A stretch of 63,735 nt of DNA, filler included, from Basidiobolus meristosporus CBS 931.73 (GCA_002104905.1; 3 parts of 3 records of this genome joined end to end with filler, not necessarily neighbours in it); one strand, 5' to 3'. Numbered from the whole stretch's first letter, positions 3,484 to 63,735 are shown. The notes: generated from the letters alone by a model not told the origin. Program-made: numbers and translations.

Positions 3484-4654
3484 GTTGTGTTGCATTATGA
3501 TTAGTTTGGGGCTTGTTCTACAATGTAGAGGCTAATCAACAATATACAACAACTTCCAGTATGCTAATACTGAAATAGTTTATTGGGAGTTTAATATACC
3601 AATAGAAGATATAACTTTCACTAATTTCCTCAATCTTAGGCTCAAAATATACTGTAGGCAGTGTTTATCACTTCTACAGCAGTGTTCTGACCTTCTGTCA
3701 ACTAATGGGCTTATTCACTTTTATAGTAACTTTTCCTTATTTGGAAGTAATTTTCCTTTCTGAGCAAATATTTCCTAATATGGAAATTAGGAACTCCCCT
3801 TTAACCTAAAGGGGTGTGTTGTAGAAGTCTCTAAAGGGGTGTCTTTAGAGTAAAGGGGCTTCTTGTAGTGGTCTCTGAAGTGGACTTTACACTAAAGGGG
3901 TGCCTAAGGGGGCTTCTTTAGAGTAAAGGGGTTTCTTAAAGGGGTCTCTAAAGGGGTCTTTAGACTAAAGGGGTGTCTAAAGGGGTGTCTTTAGAGTAAA
4001 GGGGTTTCTTAGAGGGGACTTTTCCGACAGAAAAGTGGTAGTTTCTTGTAGAACTTAGATTGGATTCTTGTGAGCTTTGCAGTCTCTTTACTGATGTAGT
4101 ACCAATCAAAGTCAGAATACTCAACAGTGCAAGTGATGCAGGGGAAGTCTTATAACCTTTAAACTTGTAATTGTAGTGTGGAGATTCTGGAAAGAGAGGC
4201 TCTCTCTTTATTTTTCAGCTGGGGAAGTCATATATATGAAAATTTTGAAGGATCAAAGTTTTTGGGCAATTGCGCAAGCAATACACATGATACAAAGCTA
4301 AAATTTTGCAGTGGCACAGATCGGACATAGGCGCAGCACCTGTGAAAATTTCACATGATGTGATTGGCTGGTTCAAAAGTTAAACACAATAAGGTATAGT
4401 ATATATAATACTTGGACTCTTTTGGTCATAACTCCTTAAGTACTGCTTTAAATGAGCTGTAATTTGAAACATGTGTTGGCTACTATGTGTTCTGTATGAC
4501 ATAATATTCTTGAGTGAATTGCTTGTCAGGGTCTGGAGCATTTGTTCATCAAAGTTGGAAATTCTTGATCTTTCACTTGTGTGTTAAAATAGCAAAAAGC
4601 AAAATAAAGAAATGAGTGCAATATTGGTTTAGAGATATTGTAGTAATGGAATAC
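3484..4654. mobile_element. 1.17-kb unclassified insertion inside the copia integrase
   Basis: Flanked by the 14-bp direct repeat TTTCACCAGTTTCT (3470-3483, 4655-4668); removing it rejoins MVERETGE to KIKKIRSDNGGEY. Confidence 0.75.
3807..4017 (+). repeat. Degenerate tandem repeat of TAAAGGGG-containing units
   Basis: About 12 GGGG tracts, mostly TAAAGGGG, at roughly 12-20 nt spacing with one longer gap. Confidence 0.9.
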
Positions 4655-56223: not shown

Positions 56224-56554
56224 ATCCACCATGGGTGCCCCATTGCCACTCGATGCTATGGTGGATGTCCATACCGGACCCGCAAGCCCTTCCCCAGTCA
56301 ATCCGCCGTCGGGCGCAGTTACTGGAGGATGCGATGATATCCAAGCAAAGGTCAACGCACTTGGCCTTAACATCAAAGCAGTGGTGTGTCTGGGTGCCAA
56401 AGACTCATTGCCTGCTGAGGCGACTGCCCCACCAGCCAACCCACCCGCAGGTTGCCCAGATGTGGATGCCAAGATCAGGGCGCTAGGACTCAACATCCGA
56501 GCAGTTGTCTGCCTTCGAGATGGGATTCAGGTGTTTGCCGATGTAACGAACTAA
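56224..56554 (+). CDS. Tandem-array secreted protein, copy A (signal peptide lost in the gap)
   Basis: Core near-identical to copies B-E; sequence begins inside the signal peptide (LSTMGAPLP). Confidence 0.85.
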
Positions 56555-57147
56555 TACTTGGACCATTGATCATTCATACTCATCATTGCTCAATAATATG
56601 GAATACCATGACTGAAGGCAATACAATGCCAGAATAAACAACACATTGACATATCATCCAATAACCGCATAGTTTGATAGTGTTCGTAAAGCATAGCAAT
56701 ATTATACTGGACGATACTAGAATACTACAATAGTAAGTAGCATTATTATACGATTCGGCCATACTCTCTTAGTTAAGGGATTGGCTAATATTCAAGTCCA
56801 TATATACGACTTCACAATGTGAATACCATGACTAGAGGCAAATTAAATTCCAGAATAAATAGCACATTGACATATCATCCAAATACAATCTTGCTTGATT
56901 GCACTGTAAAGGTACCTCTCAAATATAGAATGGGGTAGTTCAACTCTTGCAAAATGATAATCAAATAATCATGGATGGACGAATCGCTAATCGTCTTGAG
57001 AATTAACCCTGTTATGATGTTATGGAAGCAAAAAGTCATCTCTTACGCAGCATGGTGAAATACGATCAGCCTTTTTGAAAAGGACATTTATGCGATTGCT
57101 CTCATCGTGACAGATGAATCAAATGATTCCTCAGTGAATCAGTCTTC

Positions 57148-57779
57148 TGTTACGTACTGAAAGACTAATGTCCTTTAAAGAGTACGGAAATAGATAACGT
57201 GTATGTTATCTCGTAGATTCGACGGGGTAGTGTAAGAATATCTCTTAAAAGGTTAGGATGGTGACTAGTAGAAATATATTCAAGGTAATACTCGTTTCTA
57301 CCGCTCTTCTTCTAACCAAACTTATTCTTTATTTGATTGCTTGATTGGTATTTATACCTTGTTATGAGTCTGGTGATTTGTCTCGTTTACTTTTTTTCCG
57401 AGGCTACTAAGCCGTCTTTGTATGCGATGATGTCACTTAACATCGAGTGATTCCTTACTCGTAAACTACTGTTATGAATCGAGGGCAAGCGGAGGAGGAC
57501 CGGAGGATGTCCAATACGAATCAGAGAGGTTATCTGAATAGTTGATGAACCGGTAAAAGGTTGATGCTTTATTGATAGTGTTCAAAGGAGTTTATATAGA
57601 GATAGCCTCGGAGGGAGAGCTTCCGATAACGTAGGGCAAGCTTCCAAAAGGAGGGTTCAAGATGTATTAAATAACGTGTGTATCCCTGAGTGCGATTGAT
57701 CGTCTGTGTGGAATTCCAGGTGTTCGATCAGTAGTGTTCAAGTGATCGGTAGTGACTAGTTAGGATTTAAATCATAACA
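57148..57779 (-). mobile_element. 632-bp solo-LTR-like insertion immediately upstream of tRNA-Pro
   Basis: TGTTA...TAACA termini; minus-strand TATATAAA (57598-57591) then AATAAA (57573-57568); absent from the paralogous spacer before tRNA 61867; TSD imperfect (CTTC/CTAC). Confidence 0.7.
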
Positions 57780-57790
57780 CTACCATCGGA

Positions 57791-57862
57791 GGCTCAATGG
57801 TCTAGTAGTATGATTCCTCGTTCGGGTCGAGGAGGTCCCGGGTTCAATTCCCGGTTGAGCCC
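57791..57862 (+). tRNA. tRNA-Pro(CGG), copy 1
   Basis: GGCTCAA/TTGAGCC acceptor stem, CCTCG/CGAGG anticodon stem with loop TTCGGGT, GGTTCAATTCC B box, C73, downstream T-run. Confidence 0.93.
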
Positions 57863-58280
57863 ATCATTTTACTTCACTTTATGCTCTTCAATATCTTTAT
57901 TCGCACCTATGCAGCACCAGTGTATTATTGGGACAACATACAGTACATTAGTAGTACAGCATATCATGTGCCCGACAGTCAGATCATTAAAATTTCGAAT
58001 GTCAACTTAGTAAAGCATTAAATAACAGATGATTCGCTTTTGTGGGTAAAATGGTTTAACCATACTGATCAGTGTCGGTTCGAACATCTATTCTATGATA
58101 TGGGTGTGCTGAGCTTCTACACATTTTAATATGATCCACGTATGGTAGACATTCATGAATGTCACTACATGCTCAAAATACACACGAGTACAGTTGATCC
58201 GTACTTGTTTACCACGATTTCATCTCAATAACACCTTTGAGAGGTGGAAATTGAAAAGAAGCAGGGGTAAATGGCTATGA

Positions 58281-58370
58281 GATGTAAGGGTATGAGCATA
58301 TTGATGAGTGGTAGAGAGACAAATCGATTTCAGGCAGGATGAGTGCAGGGTTGCCAATGCCAACTATAAG
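58281..58370 (+). promoter_or_regulatory. Conserved upstream block of the array genes
   Basis: GATGTAAGG...ATATTGATG...CAGGATGAGTGCAGG...TATAAG recurs upstream of copies B, C, D and E, and partially at 63657-63735. Confidence 0.55.
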
Positions 58371-58432
58371 TAGACTGACGCTTGCTACCAGATCTTCACT
58401 TACTATCATTTCAAGCTATTCCACTACTCATC

Positions 58433-58807
58433 ATGAAGTTCATTCTTTCCTTGTTGGCTGTGTCCTGTGCAATCCTATCCACCATGGGTGCCCCATTGCC
58501 ACTCGATGCTATGGTAGATGTCCATACCGGACCCGCAAGCCCTTCTTTAGCCAGTCCACCATCAGGTGCAGGTGCTGAAGGATGCGATGATATCCAAGCA
58601 AAGGTCAACGCACTTGGCCTTAACATCAAAGCAGTGGTGTGTCTGGGTGCCAAAGACTCATTGCCTGCTGAGGCGACTGCCCCACCAGCCAACCCACCCG
58701 CAGGTTGCCCAGATGTGGATGCCAAGATCAGGGCGCTAGGACTCAACATCCGAGCGGTTGTCTGCCTTCGAGATGGGATCCAGGTGTTTGCCGATGTAAC
58801 GAACTAA
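58433..58807 (+). CDS. Tandem-array secreted protein, copy B (124 aa)
   Basis: Signal MKFILSLLAVSCAILSTMG; P/S/G linker; two repeats C-x18-C-L. Confidence 0.9.
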   Translation: MKFILSLLAVSCAILSTMGAPLPLDAMVDVHTGPASPSLASPPSGAGAEGCDDIQAKVNALGLNIKAVVCLGAKDSLPAEATAPPANPPAGCPDVDAKIRALGLNIRAVVCLRDGIQVFADVTN

Positions 58808-59149
58808 TACTTGGACCATTGATCATTCATACTCATCATTGCTCAATAATATGGAATATCGTGACTGAAGGCAATACAATGCCAGAATAAACAACACATT
58901 GACATATCATTCAAATACAATCTTGCTTGATTATGCTGTAAAGGTACCTCTCATATGAGACGTGAGGCAATTCAGCTCTTACAAATTGACAATTGAACAA
59001 TCATCAATGGACGAGTAGCTCATTGTGACCGCACACCTTGGAGCAAGATGATCGACCAGTTTGAAGAGGACGCTTAAGCATTTACCAGGCTGTAAAGCAC
59101 ACTGTCAACTGTATGTAGTGACTCTTGATTGAAAAGTTCAAACATCCGA

Positions 59150-59221
59150 GGCTCAATGGTCTAGTAGTATGATTCCTCGTTCGGGTCGAGGAGGTCCCGG
59201 GTTCAATTCCCGGTTGAGCCC
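59150..59221 (+). tRNA. tRNA-Pro(CGG), copy 2
   Basis: Identical to 57791-57862; TTTTT downstream. Confidence 0.93.
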
Positions 59222-59672
59222 TTCTTTTTACCTCACAATACGCTTATTAATGGTACTAAAATTGCAAAAATTGGATATTTTAAGCCTGATTGTCAATTCA
59301 GTTATATTTGAAGTGCTAGCTTAGCTCATAGAAACCAGAGAGTAGTCGAGTATAGAATGAACAGATAATGCGTTCTCATATATGGCAACAGATCAGGAAT
59401 GTTGCTACATGCTCAAAATACACACGAGTACAGTTGATCCGTGCTTGTTTACCACGATTTCATCTCAATAACACCTTTGAGAGGTGGAAATTGAAAAGAA
59501 GCAGGGGTAAATGGCTATGAGATGTAAGGGTATGAGCATATTGATGAGCGGTAGAGAGACAAATCGATTTCAGGCAGGATGAGTGCAGGGTTGCCAATGC
59601 CAACTATAAGTAGACTGACGCTTGCTACCAGATCTTCACTTACTATCATTTCAAGCTATTCCACTACTCATC

Positions 59673-60047
59673 ATGAAGTTCATTCTTTCCTTGTTGGCTG
59701 TGTCCTGTGCAATCCTATCCACCATGGGTGCCCCATTGCCACTCGATGCTATGGTAGATGTCCATACCGGACCCACAAGCCCTTCCTCAGCCAATCCACC
59801 ATCAGGTGCAGGTGCTGGAGGATGTGATGATATCCAAGCAAAGGTCAACGCACTTGGCCTTAACATCAAAGCAGTGGTGTGTCTGGGTGCCAAAGACTCA
59901 TTGCCTGCTGAGGCGACTGCCCCACCAGCCAACCCACCCGCAGGTTGCCCAGATGTGGATGCCAAGATCAGGGCGCTAGGACTCAACATCCGAGCAGTTG
60001 TCTGCCTTCGAGATGGGATTCAGGTGTTTGCCGATGTAACGAACTAA
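59673..60047 (+). CDS. Tandem-array secreted protein, copy C (124 aa)
   Basis: As copy B, with a different linker. Confidence 0.9.
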   Translation: MKFILSLLAVSCAILSTMGAPLPLDAMVDVHTGPTSPSSANPPSGAGAGGCDDIQAKVNALGLNIKAVVCLGAKDSLPAEATAPPANPPAGCPDVDAKIRALGLNIRAVVCLRDGIQVFADVTN

Positions 60048-61111
60048 TACTTGGACCATTGATCATTCATACTCATCATTGCTCAATAATATGGAATATC
60101 GTGACTGAAGGCAATACAATGCCATAATAAATAATACATTGCCATATCGTCTAAATAATGCACTGCTTTATTGCGTTTGCGAAGAGCCATGCGTTGAGGA
60201 AGTGAATTCGTATTTTAAAATATTGCCAGATTAGTTGGTCGAATATCATGAATACAATCAATGATGTTTTGATATTACGGCAATAAGCCTATAGCAGTAT
60301 GATGGATTTTTAAATATGAGCTTTAGTGACACAAAAATAGGAGTATTTCTTGACGATTTTGCTCTTCAGTGAGAATATCAGATAAGGCCGCCGTAGTAAT
60401 CATGTAGATGCCATAACCACAAAGTCTGAATGCCTTATGTAGGATTCATAGCCAAATGACCAGGTAGATGAGGTGTATTCTTTGTTGGTCATCCGTGCTG
60501 ATGGCATTTTTTGGGTTTCACATACCGAGATAAATCAGCGGTGTACGTGTGACAACCTGATTCTTTGCACAACTTTGATGTAGGTCGGGGTAAGTGATAC
60601 TTCACGTATATGTATGTGGTAAGAGGGTCGAGCAAAATTGAATGTGATGGTTCCTTGTTTGGGTTAAGGAGGCCCTGTGTTGCTCATTTAAATTTCTAGC
60701 GTGACATATTGTACGTCCTGCATAATCTATCCAGTAAAATATAAAGTGCCAGCCTAACCCATGGAAGCAAGATAGTCCAGCTGATACGCTCTGTTGGAAA
60801 AAGTGACTAAACTCATTATGGGATACTGAATCAAGATCCTGGAGATCATATATGGCTGTGAAGCTAGAATATGCAGGTACACAATTCGATCGTGCCTATA
60901 CGAACCAATTGTAGCTCAATAATACCTTTGAAAGCCAGAAATTGAAGAGAGGCAGGGGGAGTGACATTAAGTTGTAAGGATACCAACATATTGATGGGTG
61001 GTAGCGACACATCGATTTCCGACAGGATGAGTTCAGGGTTGATACAACCAAATATAAGCGGATTGTAGAGGTGTTTAACCATCATTCCCTCAAACAACAT
61101 CTAGACTCATC

Positions 61112-61489
61112 ATGCAGTTCATTCTTTCTTTGTTGGCTGTGTCTTGTGCCATCTTGGCCACCATGGGTGCTCCCTTGCCACTTAACGCTATGGTGGATAT
61201 CCATACCGGGCCCGCTGGCGCCCTGACACCCAGCAGCCCGCAACCAGGTGCAGGTACTGTAGGATGTGATGATATCCAAGCAAAGGTCAACGCACTTGGC
61301 CTTGACATCAAAGCGGTGGTGTGCCTGGGTGCCAAAGACTCATTGCCTGCTGAGGCGACTGCCCCACCAGCCAACCCACCCGCAGGTTGCCCAGATGTGG
61401 ATGCCAAGATCAGGGCGCTAGGACTCAACATCCGAGCAGTTGTCTGCCTTCGAGATGGGATTCAGGTGTTTGCCGATGTAACGAACTAA
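61112..61489 (+). CDS. Tandem-array secreted protein, copy D (125 aa, most divergent)
   Basis: MQFILSLL...; linker one residue longer; core near-identical to the other copies. Confidence 0.9.
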   Translation: MQFILSLLAVSCAILATMGAPLPLNAMVDIHTGPAGALTPSSPQPGAGTVGCDDIQAKVNALGLDIKAVVCLGAKDSLPAEATAPPANPPAGCPDVDAKIRALGLNIRAVVCLRDGIQVFADVTN

Positions 61490-61866
61490 TACTCGGACCA
61501 TTAATCATACATACTCATCATTGCTTGATAATAAGAATACCATGACTAGAGGCAATACAATATCAGAATAAATAATATATTGCCATATAATTCAAATACA
61601 TAATTGTTTAATCATGCCGTAAAGGTACTTCTCGAATGTAAGTTGGGACAGTTCAGCTCTTGCAGAAGGACAATCCAATATTCATGAACGTGTGCGTAGC
61701 CCGTCATGTTTAAAATTAATCCTGCTATGATATTATAGCAGCAAGAAACCGTTTTATGCACTGCCTGGTGCAATATTATCGGTCTGATGTGAAAGAGTGA
61801 TTACTGTATTATACTACCTAATGATGGATGAAAAAAAATTCCTCACCGAAATCTTCATGCATCCAA

Positions 61867-61938
61867 GGCTCAATGGTCTAGTAGTATGATTCCTCGTTCG
61901 GGTCGAGGAGGTCCCGGGTTCAATTCCCGGTTGAGCCC
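61867..61938 (+). tRNA. tRNA-Pro(CGG), copy 3
   Basis: Identical to copies 1 and 2; TTTT downstream. Confidence 0.93.
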
Positions 61939-62508
61939 TTACTTTTACCTATCCATACACACTTCAATATCGTTATTCACACGCATATAGTGCCAGTATA
62001 CTATTGGGACAACACATAGTATATCACTAGCACAATATATTACCTGCTTGACGGTTGGGTCAGTAAAATTTCAAATGCCAGTTTAGCTCATAGAAGCCAT
62101 GTAGCATAGTTGAATATTAAAAATAAAAGGCTAATATGATTTCCAGGTAAGATAAACGACTTCGACCACATGCAGACTAATATCAGGTCAAACTTCTGTT
62201 TGATGATGAATTAGCACATACTGAAGTCGGATTCATGTACGGATCAAGACCGAAAATGCAGGTGTGCACATTATATCGTATTTAAAAAACGATATTTTTA
62301 TTTTAATGGTGCCTTTATAAGGTGGGGTTTGAAAGAAGCAGGGATGGATGGCTATGGGATGTAAGGATATGAGCATACTAATGGGCAGTAGTGAGATAAA
62401 GCGATCTCAGACAGGATGAGTGCAGGATTGCTACTGCCAACTATAAGTAGACTGACGCTTGCTACCAGATCTTCACTACTATCATTTCAAGCTATTTCAC
62501 TACTCATC

Positions 62509-62883
62509 ATGAAGTTCATTCTTTCCTTGTTGGCTGTGTTCTGTGCAATCCTATCCACCATGGGTGCCCCATTGCCACTCGATGCTATGGTAGATGTCCA
62601 TACCGGACCCGCAAGCCCTTCTTTAGCCAGTCCACCATCAGGCACAGGTACTGGAGGATGCGATGATATCCAAGCAAAGGTCAACGCACTTGGCCTTAAC
62701 ATCAAAGCAGTGGTGTGTCTGGGTGCCAAAGACTCATTGCCTGCTGAGGCGACTGCCCCACCAGCCAACCCACCCGCAGGTTGCCCAGATGTGGATGCCA
62801 AGATCAGGGCGCTAGGACTCAACATCCGAGCAGTTGTCTGCCTTCGAGATGGGATTCAGGTGTTTGCCGATGTAACGAACTAA
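62509..62883 (+). CDS. Tandem-array secreted protein, copy E (124 aa)
   Basis: As copy B, with signal MKFILSLLAVFCAILSTMG. Confidence 0.9.
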   Translation: MKFILSLLAVFCAILSTMGAPLPLDAMVDVHTGPASPSLASPPSGTGTGGCDDIQAKVNALGLNIKAVVCLGAKDSLPAEATAPPANPPAGCPDVDAKIRALGLNIRAVVCLRDGIQVFADVTN

Positions 62884-63735
62884 TACTTGGACCATTGATC
62901 ATTCATACTCATCATTGCTCGATAATTTGGAATACCGTGACTAGAGGCAATACAACACCAGAATAAACATTGACATATCATCCAATAACAGCATAGTATA
63001 AATATAATAGATTATATTAGAATACTACAGTAGCAAGTAGCGGTTTGATAGATAAGGATTTAGCGAATACTCAAGTACATACATTCGGCTCCTTCGCCGT
63101 GAATTGCCACGAAATATAAGCTATAATGGTCGCTTCTTTGCTCAATATAACGCAAGTCATATTTAAGCCTTCTTCCCCAAGATTCGTAGCTGAAATATAG
63201 TACAAGAAATCTTTTGTATGTATCGTACTACTGTGAACAAATTTCTAATAGACGGGCTTTAGCTAGAGTAAACCGATTCTTAGTGGGCTGCTTTATTATG
63301 GTAAATGATACTTTGTTAATGGCTCCTCATCCTGGTCCTAAATCCAATTCTCGGTTATTTTAGTTGGACTATGAAGAAAAAGATCAAAATCCCTGCATTC
63401 AATACATGAAATTTAGGAGGAAGAGAATAGAAGGTAAGATTACTATACTATTATCGGTATAAATCGAGGGTAAAAGGTATTTTATATATATAAGGAGCCT
63501 GAATTCACCATCATACATAGCACATTTACTGAAAATGATACATAGGTATACAAAGCTGGAAATATGCAGATAGCCAGTAGGATCATCAAGACGATTTGAT
63601 AGCAATAATACCCATAACCTTAAACAGTGAAAGGAGGCAGGAGTGAATACCTAAGAGATGTAAGGATCCGAATATATTGCTGGGTACTATAGAGAGGCTA
63701 AAATATTTCAAGCAGGATGCGTGCTGGGTAGGAAA

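Follow-up and report, generated by a model that had tools for sequence, protein, structure and literature searches.

Positions 56224 to 63735 of the window, that is, of the whole 63,735-nt stretch of DNA that was analysed, are the entire 7,512-bp contig MCFE01001353.1 (locus L013) of Basidiobolus meristosporus CBS 931.73 (assembly GCA_002104905.1). B. meristosporus is an early-diverging fungus that belongs to the Zoopagomycota. The contig carries a tandem array of genes for a small, probably secreted protein, which we call copies A to E, with genes for tRNA-Pro(CGG) in the spacers (Table 1). Coordinates without a locus label are places in the window, and L-numbers are loci that were fetched separately. 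The initial annotation had described five gene copies on the same strand and three identical plus-strand tRNA-Pro(CGG) genes, and this is confirmed because ARAGORN and Rfam find the three tRNA genes and these are mutually identical at 72 of 72 positions. The same identity of 72/72 extends over the 7 copies that have been sequenced in the two assemblies described below. With the Rfam model RF00005 each of the three scores 56 bits against a gathering score of 29 and is matched over the full length, 1-71. The cloverleaf with the correct anticodon loop is present according to both programs, and an internal promoter with an A-box-like element, TGGTCTAGTAGT, and a B-box-like element, GGTTCAATTCC, can be read from the sequence. 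In all three genes TTTT or TTTTT begins 3-5 nt past the 3' end. Thus, by structure, internal boxes, and T-run terminator, the tRNA-Pro genes are functional-looking. The tRNA-to-ATG distances of 642 bp for B, 523 bp for C, and 642 bp for E that had been noted at the outset were measured again and are correct.

The array has been assembled a second time, on scaffold MCFE01000067.1 (scaffold 67; loci L001 and L012), at 98.7-98.9% identity. The order there is g1, tRNA, A, tRNA, B, tRNA, C, D, tRNA, E, F, and then pseudogene G, so this version consists of seven genes, one pseudogene, and four tRNA genes, and the 642/523/642 spacings are found again in it. Copy A of the contig corresponds to gene 2 of the scaffold 67 array. 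A third contig, MCFE01001178.1 (L002), overlaps the right end of the window at 99.7% identity and runs on through F and pseudogene G, so that the two contigs together make up one version of the array and scaffold 67 the other. The sole large difference between the two assembled versions is a 310-bp insertion near the first tRNA gene (tRNA1), and the two versions are either two haplotypes or a very recent duplicate. It could be asked whether the repeat structure is an artefact of assembly, namely, a collapsed or expanded repeat or a chimeric contig, since the contig ends on both sides in repeats, starting inside copy A and stopping in the promoter of F, and since some of the units are 96-98% identical. 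We consider this hardly conceivable. The order, the spacings, and the copy-specific differences are the same in two independent assemblies, which argues against an artefact, and each copy has its own diagnostic substitutions and its own spacer.

Table 1. Features of the array, given as places in the window
Feature	Position	Strand	Remarks
Copy A	56224..56554	+	5' end cut by contig start; stop codon 56552-56554; 95.9% to B over 438 nt
Orphan 3' untranslated region (3'UTR) relic, A-B spacer	56821..56994	+	second post-stop block without a gene in front
Solo-LTR-like insertion, 310 bp (LTR, long terminal repeat)	57470..57779	+	from alignment of filled and empty site
tRNA-Pro(CGG) gene 1	57791..57862	+	ARAGORN, Rfam; 642 bp before ATG of B; T-run directly 3'
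Copy B	58433..58807	+	124 aa
tRNA-Pro(CGG) gene 2	59150..59221	+	ARAGORN, Rfam; 523 bp before ATG of C
Copy C	59673..60047	+	124 aa; 97.4% to B over 765 nt including promoter
Decayed tRNA-Pro relic core, C-D spacer	60647..60681	+	matches tRNA positions 20-54, 27/35 identical
Copy D	61112..61489	+	125 aa; older 'MQFIL' type
tRNA-Pro(CGG) gene 3	61867..61938	+	ARAGORN, Rfam; 642 bp before ATG of E
Copy E	62509..62883	+	124 aa
Second tRNA relic candidate (T-arm region), E-F spacer	63334..63356	+	17/23 identical, weak
Promoter of sixth copy F (= P0003)	63604..63735	+	74.5% to promoters of B and C; coding sequence past contig end, on MCFE01001178.1

The repeat unit and exchange between copies

The gene copies are same-strand, head-to-tail paralogues that share homology in the promoter, the coding sequence, and the 3'UTR. 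Over this gene block of about 700 bp, copies A, B, C, and E share 92-97% identity with one another and 81-88% with D, whereas the rest of the spacer can be aligned only in patches of 72-80% identity; the spacers are therefore more diverged than the genes and the tRNAs, as had been stated. The units fall into two types: the tRNA starts 523 bp before the ATG in those that lead from g1 to A and from B to C, and 642 bp before it in those that lead from A to B and from D to E. The equal length of 642 bp in two units arises from cancelling indels, the alignment offset going from 4076 to 4078 and back. The youngest duplication is seen on scaffold 67, where L001 1435-3162 and L001 4612-6341 are 96.4% identical over 1730 bp. 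It starts 8 nt before the ATG and ends about 105 nt past the stop codon, in the 3'UTR, and the tRNA gene is in its interior. The spacer between A and B holds an orphan 3'UTR, which matches the 3' flank of B (58854-59026) at 80% identity and that of D at 72%. This block marks a gene copy that was lost from the spacer, so that here, too, the exchange points were in gene blocks.

These end points bear on the proposal in the initial annotation that the tRNA genes drive the expansion of the array, whether they cause it to expand and contract as fork pause sites, as recombination hot spots, or as the homology for unequal exchange. It is well established that tRNA genes (tDNAs) pause replication forks and mark rearrangement breakpoints in yeast, and the structural polymorphism between the haplotypes lies directly at tRNA1. 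That polymorphism, however, is a transposon insertion and not an exchange. Moreover, the youngest duplication holds its tRNA in the interior and has its ends in the 5' and 3' regions of genes, and the gene blocks, with about 700 bp at 92-97%, offer roughly ten times the homology of the 72 bp of a tRNA. Arrays and pairs of the same family that have no tRNA genes, which are described below, have also duplicated. We therefore think it very unlikely that the tRNA genes drive the array.

Exchange between copies would also account for the pattern of divergence within the genes. When B is compared with D, synonymous divergence (pS) falls from 0.44 over the first 51 codons to 0.09 over the remaining 74, and this abrupt change within the gene and the presence of mosaic copies mark conversion tracts, the 3' two thirds of D having been converted to the type of A, B, C, and E. 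When B is compared with C, the nonsynonymous divergence (pN) of the 3' part is 0 and its pS is 0.05. The amino acid variation among A, B, C, and E is confined to a 16-residue Pro/Ser/Gly linker (58535-58582, 59775-59822, and 62611-62658). There are few linker cassettes, and they are at different positions of the array in each haplotype, copy B of this contig having the cassette of C on scaffold 67; the reshuffled cassettes thus indicate ongoing exchange between copies. Copy D is identical in both haplotypes. Gene conversion among the copies explains why the genes are far less diverged than the spacers. The array has dead members as well, namely, the orphan 3'UTR, a tRNA relic, and pseudogene G. 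The last of these (L001 10761-11138, also L002 2667-3041) lies about 400 bp past F, has five in-frame stops, is uncalled, and forms the right edge of the array.

The tRNA genes, their relics, and the tRNA-free loci of the family

The C-D spacer had been described as free of tRNA, and this has to be corrected because it holds a decayed tRNA-Pro relic. The local alignment of this relic has a score of 19, whereas the maximum among shuffles was 15, and none of 2000 dinucleotide-preserving shuffles (0/2000) reached 19. The relic is placed in the same order as the block downstream of the intact tRNAs (repeat family D10 of the self-comparison). Its identity of 77% is that of the spacers. Five of its eight differences are C-to-T or G-to-A, and all four CpG sites of the segment have been destroyed. 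A second candidate in the E-F spacer is a short and weak match, whose score was reached by 155 of 2000 shuffles (p about 0.08). The Rfam tRNA model detects neither relic even at E<=10, and blastn-short missed both. The relic in the C-D spacer implies that the ancestral unit carried a tRNA and that at least one redundant copy was lost by neglect. Since the intact tRNAs are at homologous positions with homologous flanks, and since the relic falls in line with them, there was one ancestral unit, and the suggestion that the amplified unit is a cassette of tRNA plus gene is borne out.

At each intact tRNA there is a conserved island with an identity of 91-93% over 102-111 bp, in which all mismatches are outside the 72-bp body and the flanks are at about 75%. 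Because the tRNAs are identical right up to their borders and not beyond, the pattern fits purifying selection acting on the tRNA molecule better than it fits conversion tracts, and selection rather than conversion is probably what keeps the tRNAs identical. An origin of the tRNAs as a short interspersed nuclear element (SINE) or by retroposition was considered and rejected, since the conserved block is the tRNA with about 20 nt on either side and there is neither a tail nor target-site duplications. It is also contradicted by the homologous positions and flanks of the copies.

Based on these findings, the explanation that we favor as the probable one is passive hitchhiking, in which a single ancestral juxtaposition of gene and tRNA was copied along in a tandem array with the tRNAs as passengers. 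According to this proposal, a lineage-specific array of small secreted Cys-repeat genes would have grown by repeated unequal crossing-over, the mechanism that we infer for the array, of a unit of 1.2-2 kb. Early on, one functional tRNA-Pro(CGG) gene would by chance have been part of this unit, situated downstream of a copy's polyadenylation region and upstream of the following copy's promoter, and each later duplication would have copied the tRNA too. The near-identical promoter-CDS-3'UTR blocks (CDS, coding sequence) of about 700 bp would supply the homology for misalignment and gene conversion, with the 72-bp tRNA as passenger. The four tRNA copies, three of them in the window, would then owe their identity to purifying selection for what the tRNA itself does, and one or more redundant copies would have decayed at the neutral rate of the spacer. 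All this points to the array being a by-product of ordinary tandem duplication and not a new mechanism.

This proposal was compared with eight further loci of the family in two species, namely, L003, L007, L010, L009, and L008 of B. meristosporus and L004, L005, and L006 of Basidiobolus ranarum. L003, L007, and L010 are divergent gene pairs and L009 is a single gene. L008 (MCFE01000036.1, 25969-46664) holds 11 or more clustered copies, located on both strands, that code for proteins of 231-241 aa of the same superfamily with Pro-rich 'PPxDPY' linkers, and it has no tRNA gene in 20 kb. Altogether, seven of the eight loci (L003, L004, L006, L007, L008, L009, and L010) lack a tRNA gene over as much as 20 kb. 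Overall, the linkage between the family and tRNA genes thus does not go beyond one co-duplication, which is the outcome that the initial annotation had named as refuting its proposal, the exception being L005, a 2.6-kb contig of B. ranarum (JASJQH010010038.1). This contig has a tRNA-Leu(CAG) gene at 2296-2379 on the same strand, 951 bp downstream of P0005, which is one of the two closest B. ranarum homologues of the array genes.

Two observations weigh against passive hitchhiking. The first is this tRNA-Leu(CAG) beside P0005, which is mildly surprising given that the other sequence examined, about 150 kb, held one tRNA; it could be a coincidence or a trace of an ancestral tRNA-rich neighbourhood. 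The second is that an intact tRNA precedes A, B, C, and E, and that precisely these four make up the young, expanding subtype. The pattern is consistent with common descent but also with a benefit that these copies derive from the tRNA.

Such a benefit could be that the tRNA genes act as boundary or insulator elements bound by TFIIIC and RNA polymerase III (Pol III), which keep the units independently active or unsilenced and have been retained for this reason. The role of tRNA genes as barrier elements is established in yeasts. The TATA-like boxes of A, B, C, and E follow the intact tRNAs at a distance of about 450-570 bp, and the tRNA bodies are perfectly conserved inside diverged spacers. 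That the conservation stops exactly at the tRNA body is, however, what is expected for selection on the tRNA molecule itself. The reading frames of D and F are intact behind a decayed or absent tRNA, with D unchanged between the haplotypes, and the large L008 cluster of the same superfamily does without tRNA genes. Nor does the composition of the DNA point to shielding. The observed-to-expected ratio of CpG (CpG o/e) is 0.65 for this contig and 0.48 for its coding sequence, and in the scaffold 67 array it is 0.65-0.68 in the spacers and 0.45 in the coding sequence. The tRNA-free L008 array has 0.66 in the spacers and 0.49 in the coding sequence, and the other loci range from 0.61 to 0.92. The array is thus not CpG-rich, contrary to what had been thought, and since CpG depletion is equal with and without tRNAs, these make no visible difference. 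Shielding of the array by its tRNA genes, which the initial annotation had offered as a possibility, is therefore unlikely.

The supply of tRNA was examined in the same way. Proline is encoded in the array genes by CCA 37 times, CCC 12 times, CCT nine times, and CCG three times (3/61), and CCG thus makes up 5% of their Pro codons against 11% in other local genes. That the tRNAs are there to supply the array genes is rejected because there are too few CCG codons, in agreement with the earlier judgement. A related possibility is that selection has acted on the dosage of tRNA-Pro(CGG), in which case the array would serve to raise the number of a tRNA gene that is otherwise rare, with the protein genes as passengers. 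Four identical, functional-looking tRNA copies have been retained, and no other tRNA-Pro(CGG) was found in the approximately 190 kb of B. meristosporus and B. ranarum that was examined. On the other hand, the coding parts are under strong purifying selection, as the 3' parts of B and C show, at least one tRNA copy was allowed to decay, and CCG is a minor codon locally (5-18%). Selection on dosage is therefore highly improbable. A broader idea is that the intact tRNA-Pro genes are more than passengers in several respects: as per-unit Pol III/TFIIIC elements they could let A, B, C, and E be transcribed independently, as landing pads for Ty3-like elements they could seed structural variation, and the array may hold most of the tRNA-Pro(CGG) genes, which would couple the copy number of the secreted-protein genes to tRNA dosage. 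We rate the chances of this as low.

Passive hitchhiking has parallels in other arrays in which Pol III genes ride along, since 5S rRNA genes are linked to ribosomal DNA, histone, or spliced-leader repeats, and the human tRNA cluster at 6p22 is interleaved with histone genes. As in these cases, a small Pol III gene is co-amplified inside the repeat unit of an array of RNA polymerase II (Pol II) or RNA polymerase I genes; the differences are that here the gene is for a tRNA and not for 5S rRNA, the partner is a genus-specific secreted-protein gene, and the array is small and recent. Tandem clusters of tDNAs that arise by local duplication and turn over rapidly into pseudogenes are well documented (PMC2888827, PMC13437025). 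The clusters of Arabidopsis (Pro and Ser-Tyr-Tyr), the Entamoeba arrays, and those of teleosts resemble the present array in that identical tRNAs recur with a fixed period on one strand and redundant copies decay (PMC2888827, PMC13437025), but here the unit adds a complete Pol II gene that supplies most of the homology, and there are only four tRNA copies. Clusters of small secreted proteins in fungi, such as the effectors of smuts (PMC4824034), likewise have same-strand paralogues, a pseudogene, a variable region, restriction to a lineage, and birth-and-death evolution with conversion. In contrast to the smut-type clusters (PMC4824034), no pathogenic context has been shown here, and the tRNA in most spacers is a feature that is not described there. 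Our searches of the literature turned up no description of a fungal array in which tRNA genes and secreted-protein genes alternate one to one. On a small scale, the array shows cleanly how a family of tRNA genes can grow and shrink when its members are carried along as a protein-coding gene next to them is duplicated, with intact tRNA copies, a relic, and a copy hit by a transposon all side by side.

An LTR-like insertion upstream of tRNA1

The 310-bp insertion that distinguishes the two assembled versions has the ends TGTTATGA...TCATAACA, that is, TG...CA with a perfect 8-bp terminal inverted repeat, and it is flanked by a target-site duplication, CTAC, of 4 bp (or 5 bp). It ends 11 nt upstream of the 5' end of the mature tRNA1, and the target site spans -15 to -8. 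The site is empty on scaffold 67, so that the insertion is in the haplotype of this contig only. Transcription by Pol III starts about 10-12 nt before the mature tRNA. For Ty3 and the Dictyostelium element DGLT-A, the integration sites lie about 12-15 nt before the mature tRNA (PMC5911963, PMC5006619). Given its termini, inverted repeats, target-site duplication, empty allelic site, and position near the Pol III start site, the insertion looks like a solo LTR of a tRNA-targeting, Ty3-like retrotransposon. The remark in the initial annotation that tRNA genes are targets of retrotransposons thus holds at this locus, in one haplotype. The solo LTRs of Ty3 (sigma) and of DGLT-A (PMC5911963, PMC5006619) agree with the insertion in a length of about 310 bp, TG...CA ends, short inverted repeats, a target-site duplication, a placement 11-15 nt upstream of the mature tRNA 5' end, and polymorphism of the insertion. 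They differ in that here no internal coding element was found, the duplication may be of 4 bp and not 5 bp, and one copy was seen. No other copy of the 310-bp element was found among the fetched loci, to which the comparison was confined. If the identification is right, this would be the first sequence-level evidence of Ty3-like, tRNA-targeted integration in this early-diverging fungal lineage.

The protein family and the flanks of the array

The array genes code for a protein with a signal-peptide-like N-terminus, a conserved APLPL segment, a variable Pro/Ser/Gly linker, and two C-x18-C modules. In the predicted structure a Cys pair closes each module, which consists of a helix and a strand. 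Among 1.84 billion representative proteins, a profile search returned only 14 relatives, all of them from B. meristosporus or B. ranarum, and the number of C-x18-C modules in the family runs from 2 to 10 or more. The signal peptide, together with the Pro-rich linkers that longer relatives have, suggests a secreted or cell-wall role for the proteins. Both gene types of the array are probably expressed.

Three of the proteins, P0003, P0004, and P0016, are labelled "Hydrophobin" in UniRef. Like hydrophobins, the array protein is small, secreted, fungal, and Cys-containing, with hydrophobic Leu/Val/Gly-rich stretches. Unlike hydrophobins, which have the eight-Cys pattern C-CC-C-C-CC-C, the mature array protein has four Cys arranged as two C-x18-C modules and has no CC pair, and none of eight family members matched the Pfam hydrophobin models at E<=10. 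A hydrophobin identity was therefore rejected. Pfam returned nothing meaningful for the array protein, a feature search of the ESM Atlas was also empty, and a sequence profile search of the PDB yielded no solved relative. The first AlphaFold model had a pLDDT (predicted local distance difference test score) of 52, and a second one, made with 14 sequences, had 65 overall and 71-78 in the core. This second model matched no PDB fold at E<=0.001, and the TM-scores against the Atlas were at most 0.37. We define here an undescribed secreted family that is found only in Basidiobolus, and the hydrophobin label of some of its members is unsupported.

The array is flanked by a CDP-diglyceride synthase (CTP_transf_1) gene and a major facilitator superfamily (MFS) transporter gene, and there is no further tRNA gene in the 10 kb on either side of it on scaffold 67. 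The left flank is syntenic with B. ranarum JASJQH010007541.1 (L014), which has Tsr1, a hypothetical gene, AspRS, and CTP_transf_1. This contig overlaps no contig of the family and stops 167 nt past CTP_transf_1, where the array would begin. The MFS gene of the right flank has many paralogues, and its best match in B. ranarum is not syntenic.

Finally, the deposited gene models differ in where they start. Those of A, B, C, and E, with 107 aa, start at an internal Met and thereby omit the 17-residue signal-peptide-like N-terminus (window 58433-58483 and the equivalents), whereas the deposited models of D and F do include it. Copy E also has an in-frame ATG upstream (window 62416-62508) that gives an open reading frame of 155 aa; in B and C this ATG is out of frame, and the difference appears to be caused by a 1-nt deletion in E relative to B and C. 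Since the upstream ATG of E lies 5' of the TATA-like box, it is probably absent from the mRNA.

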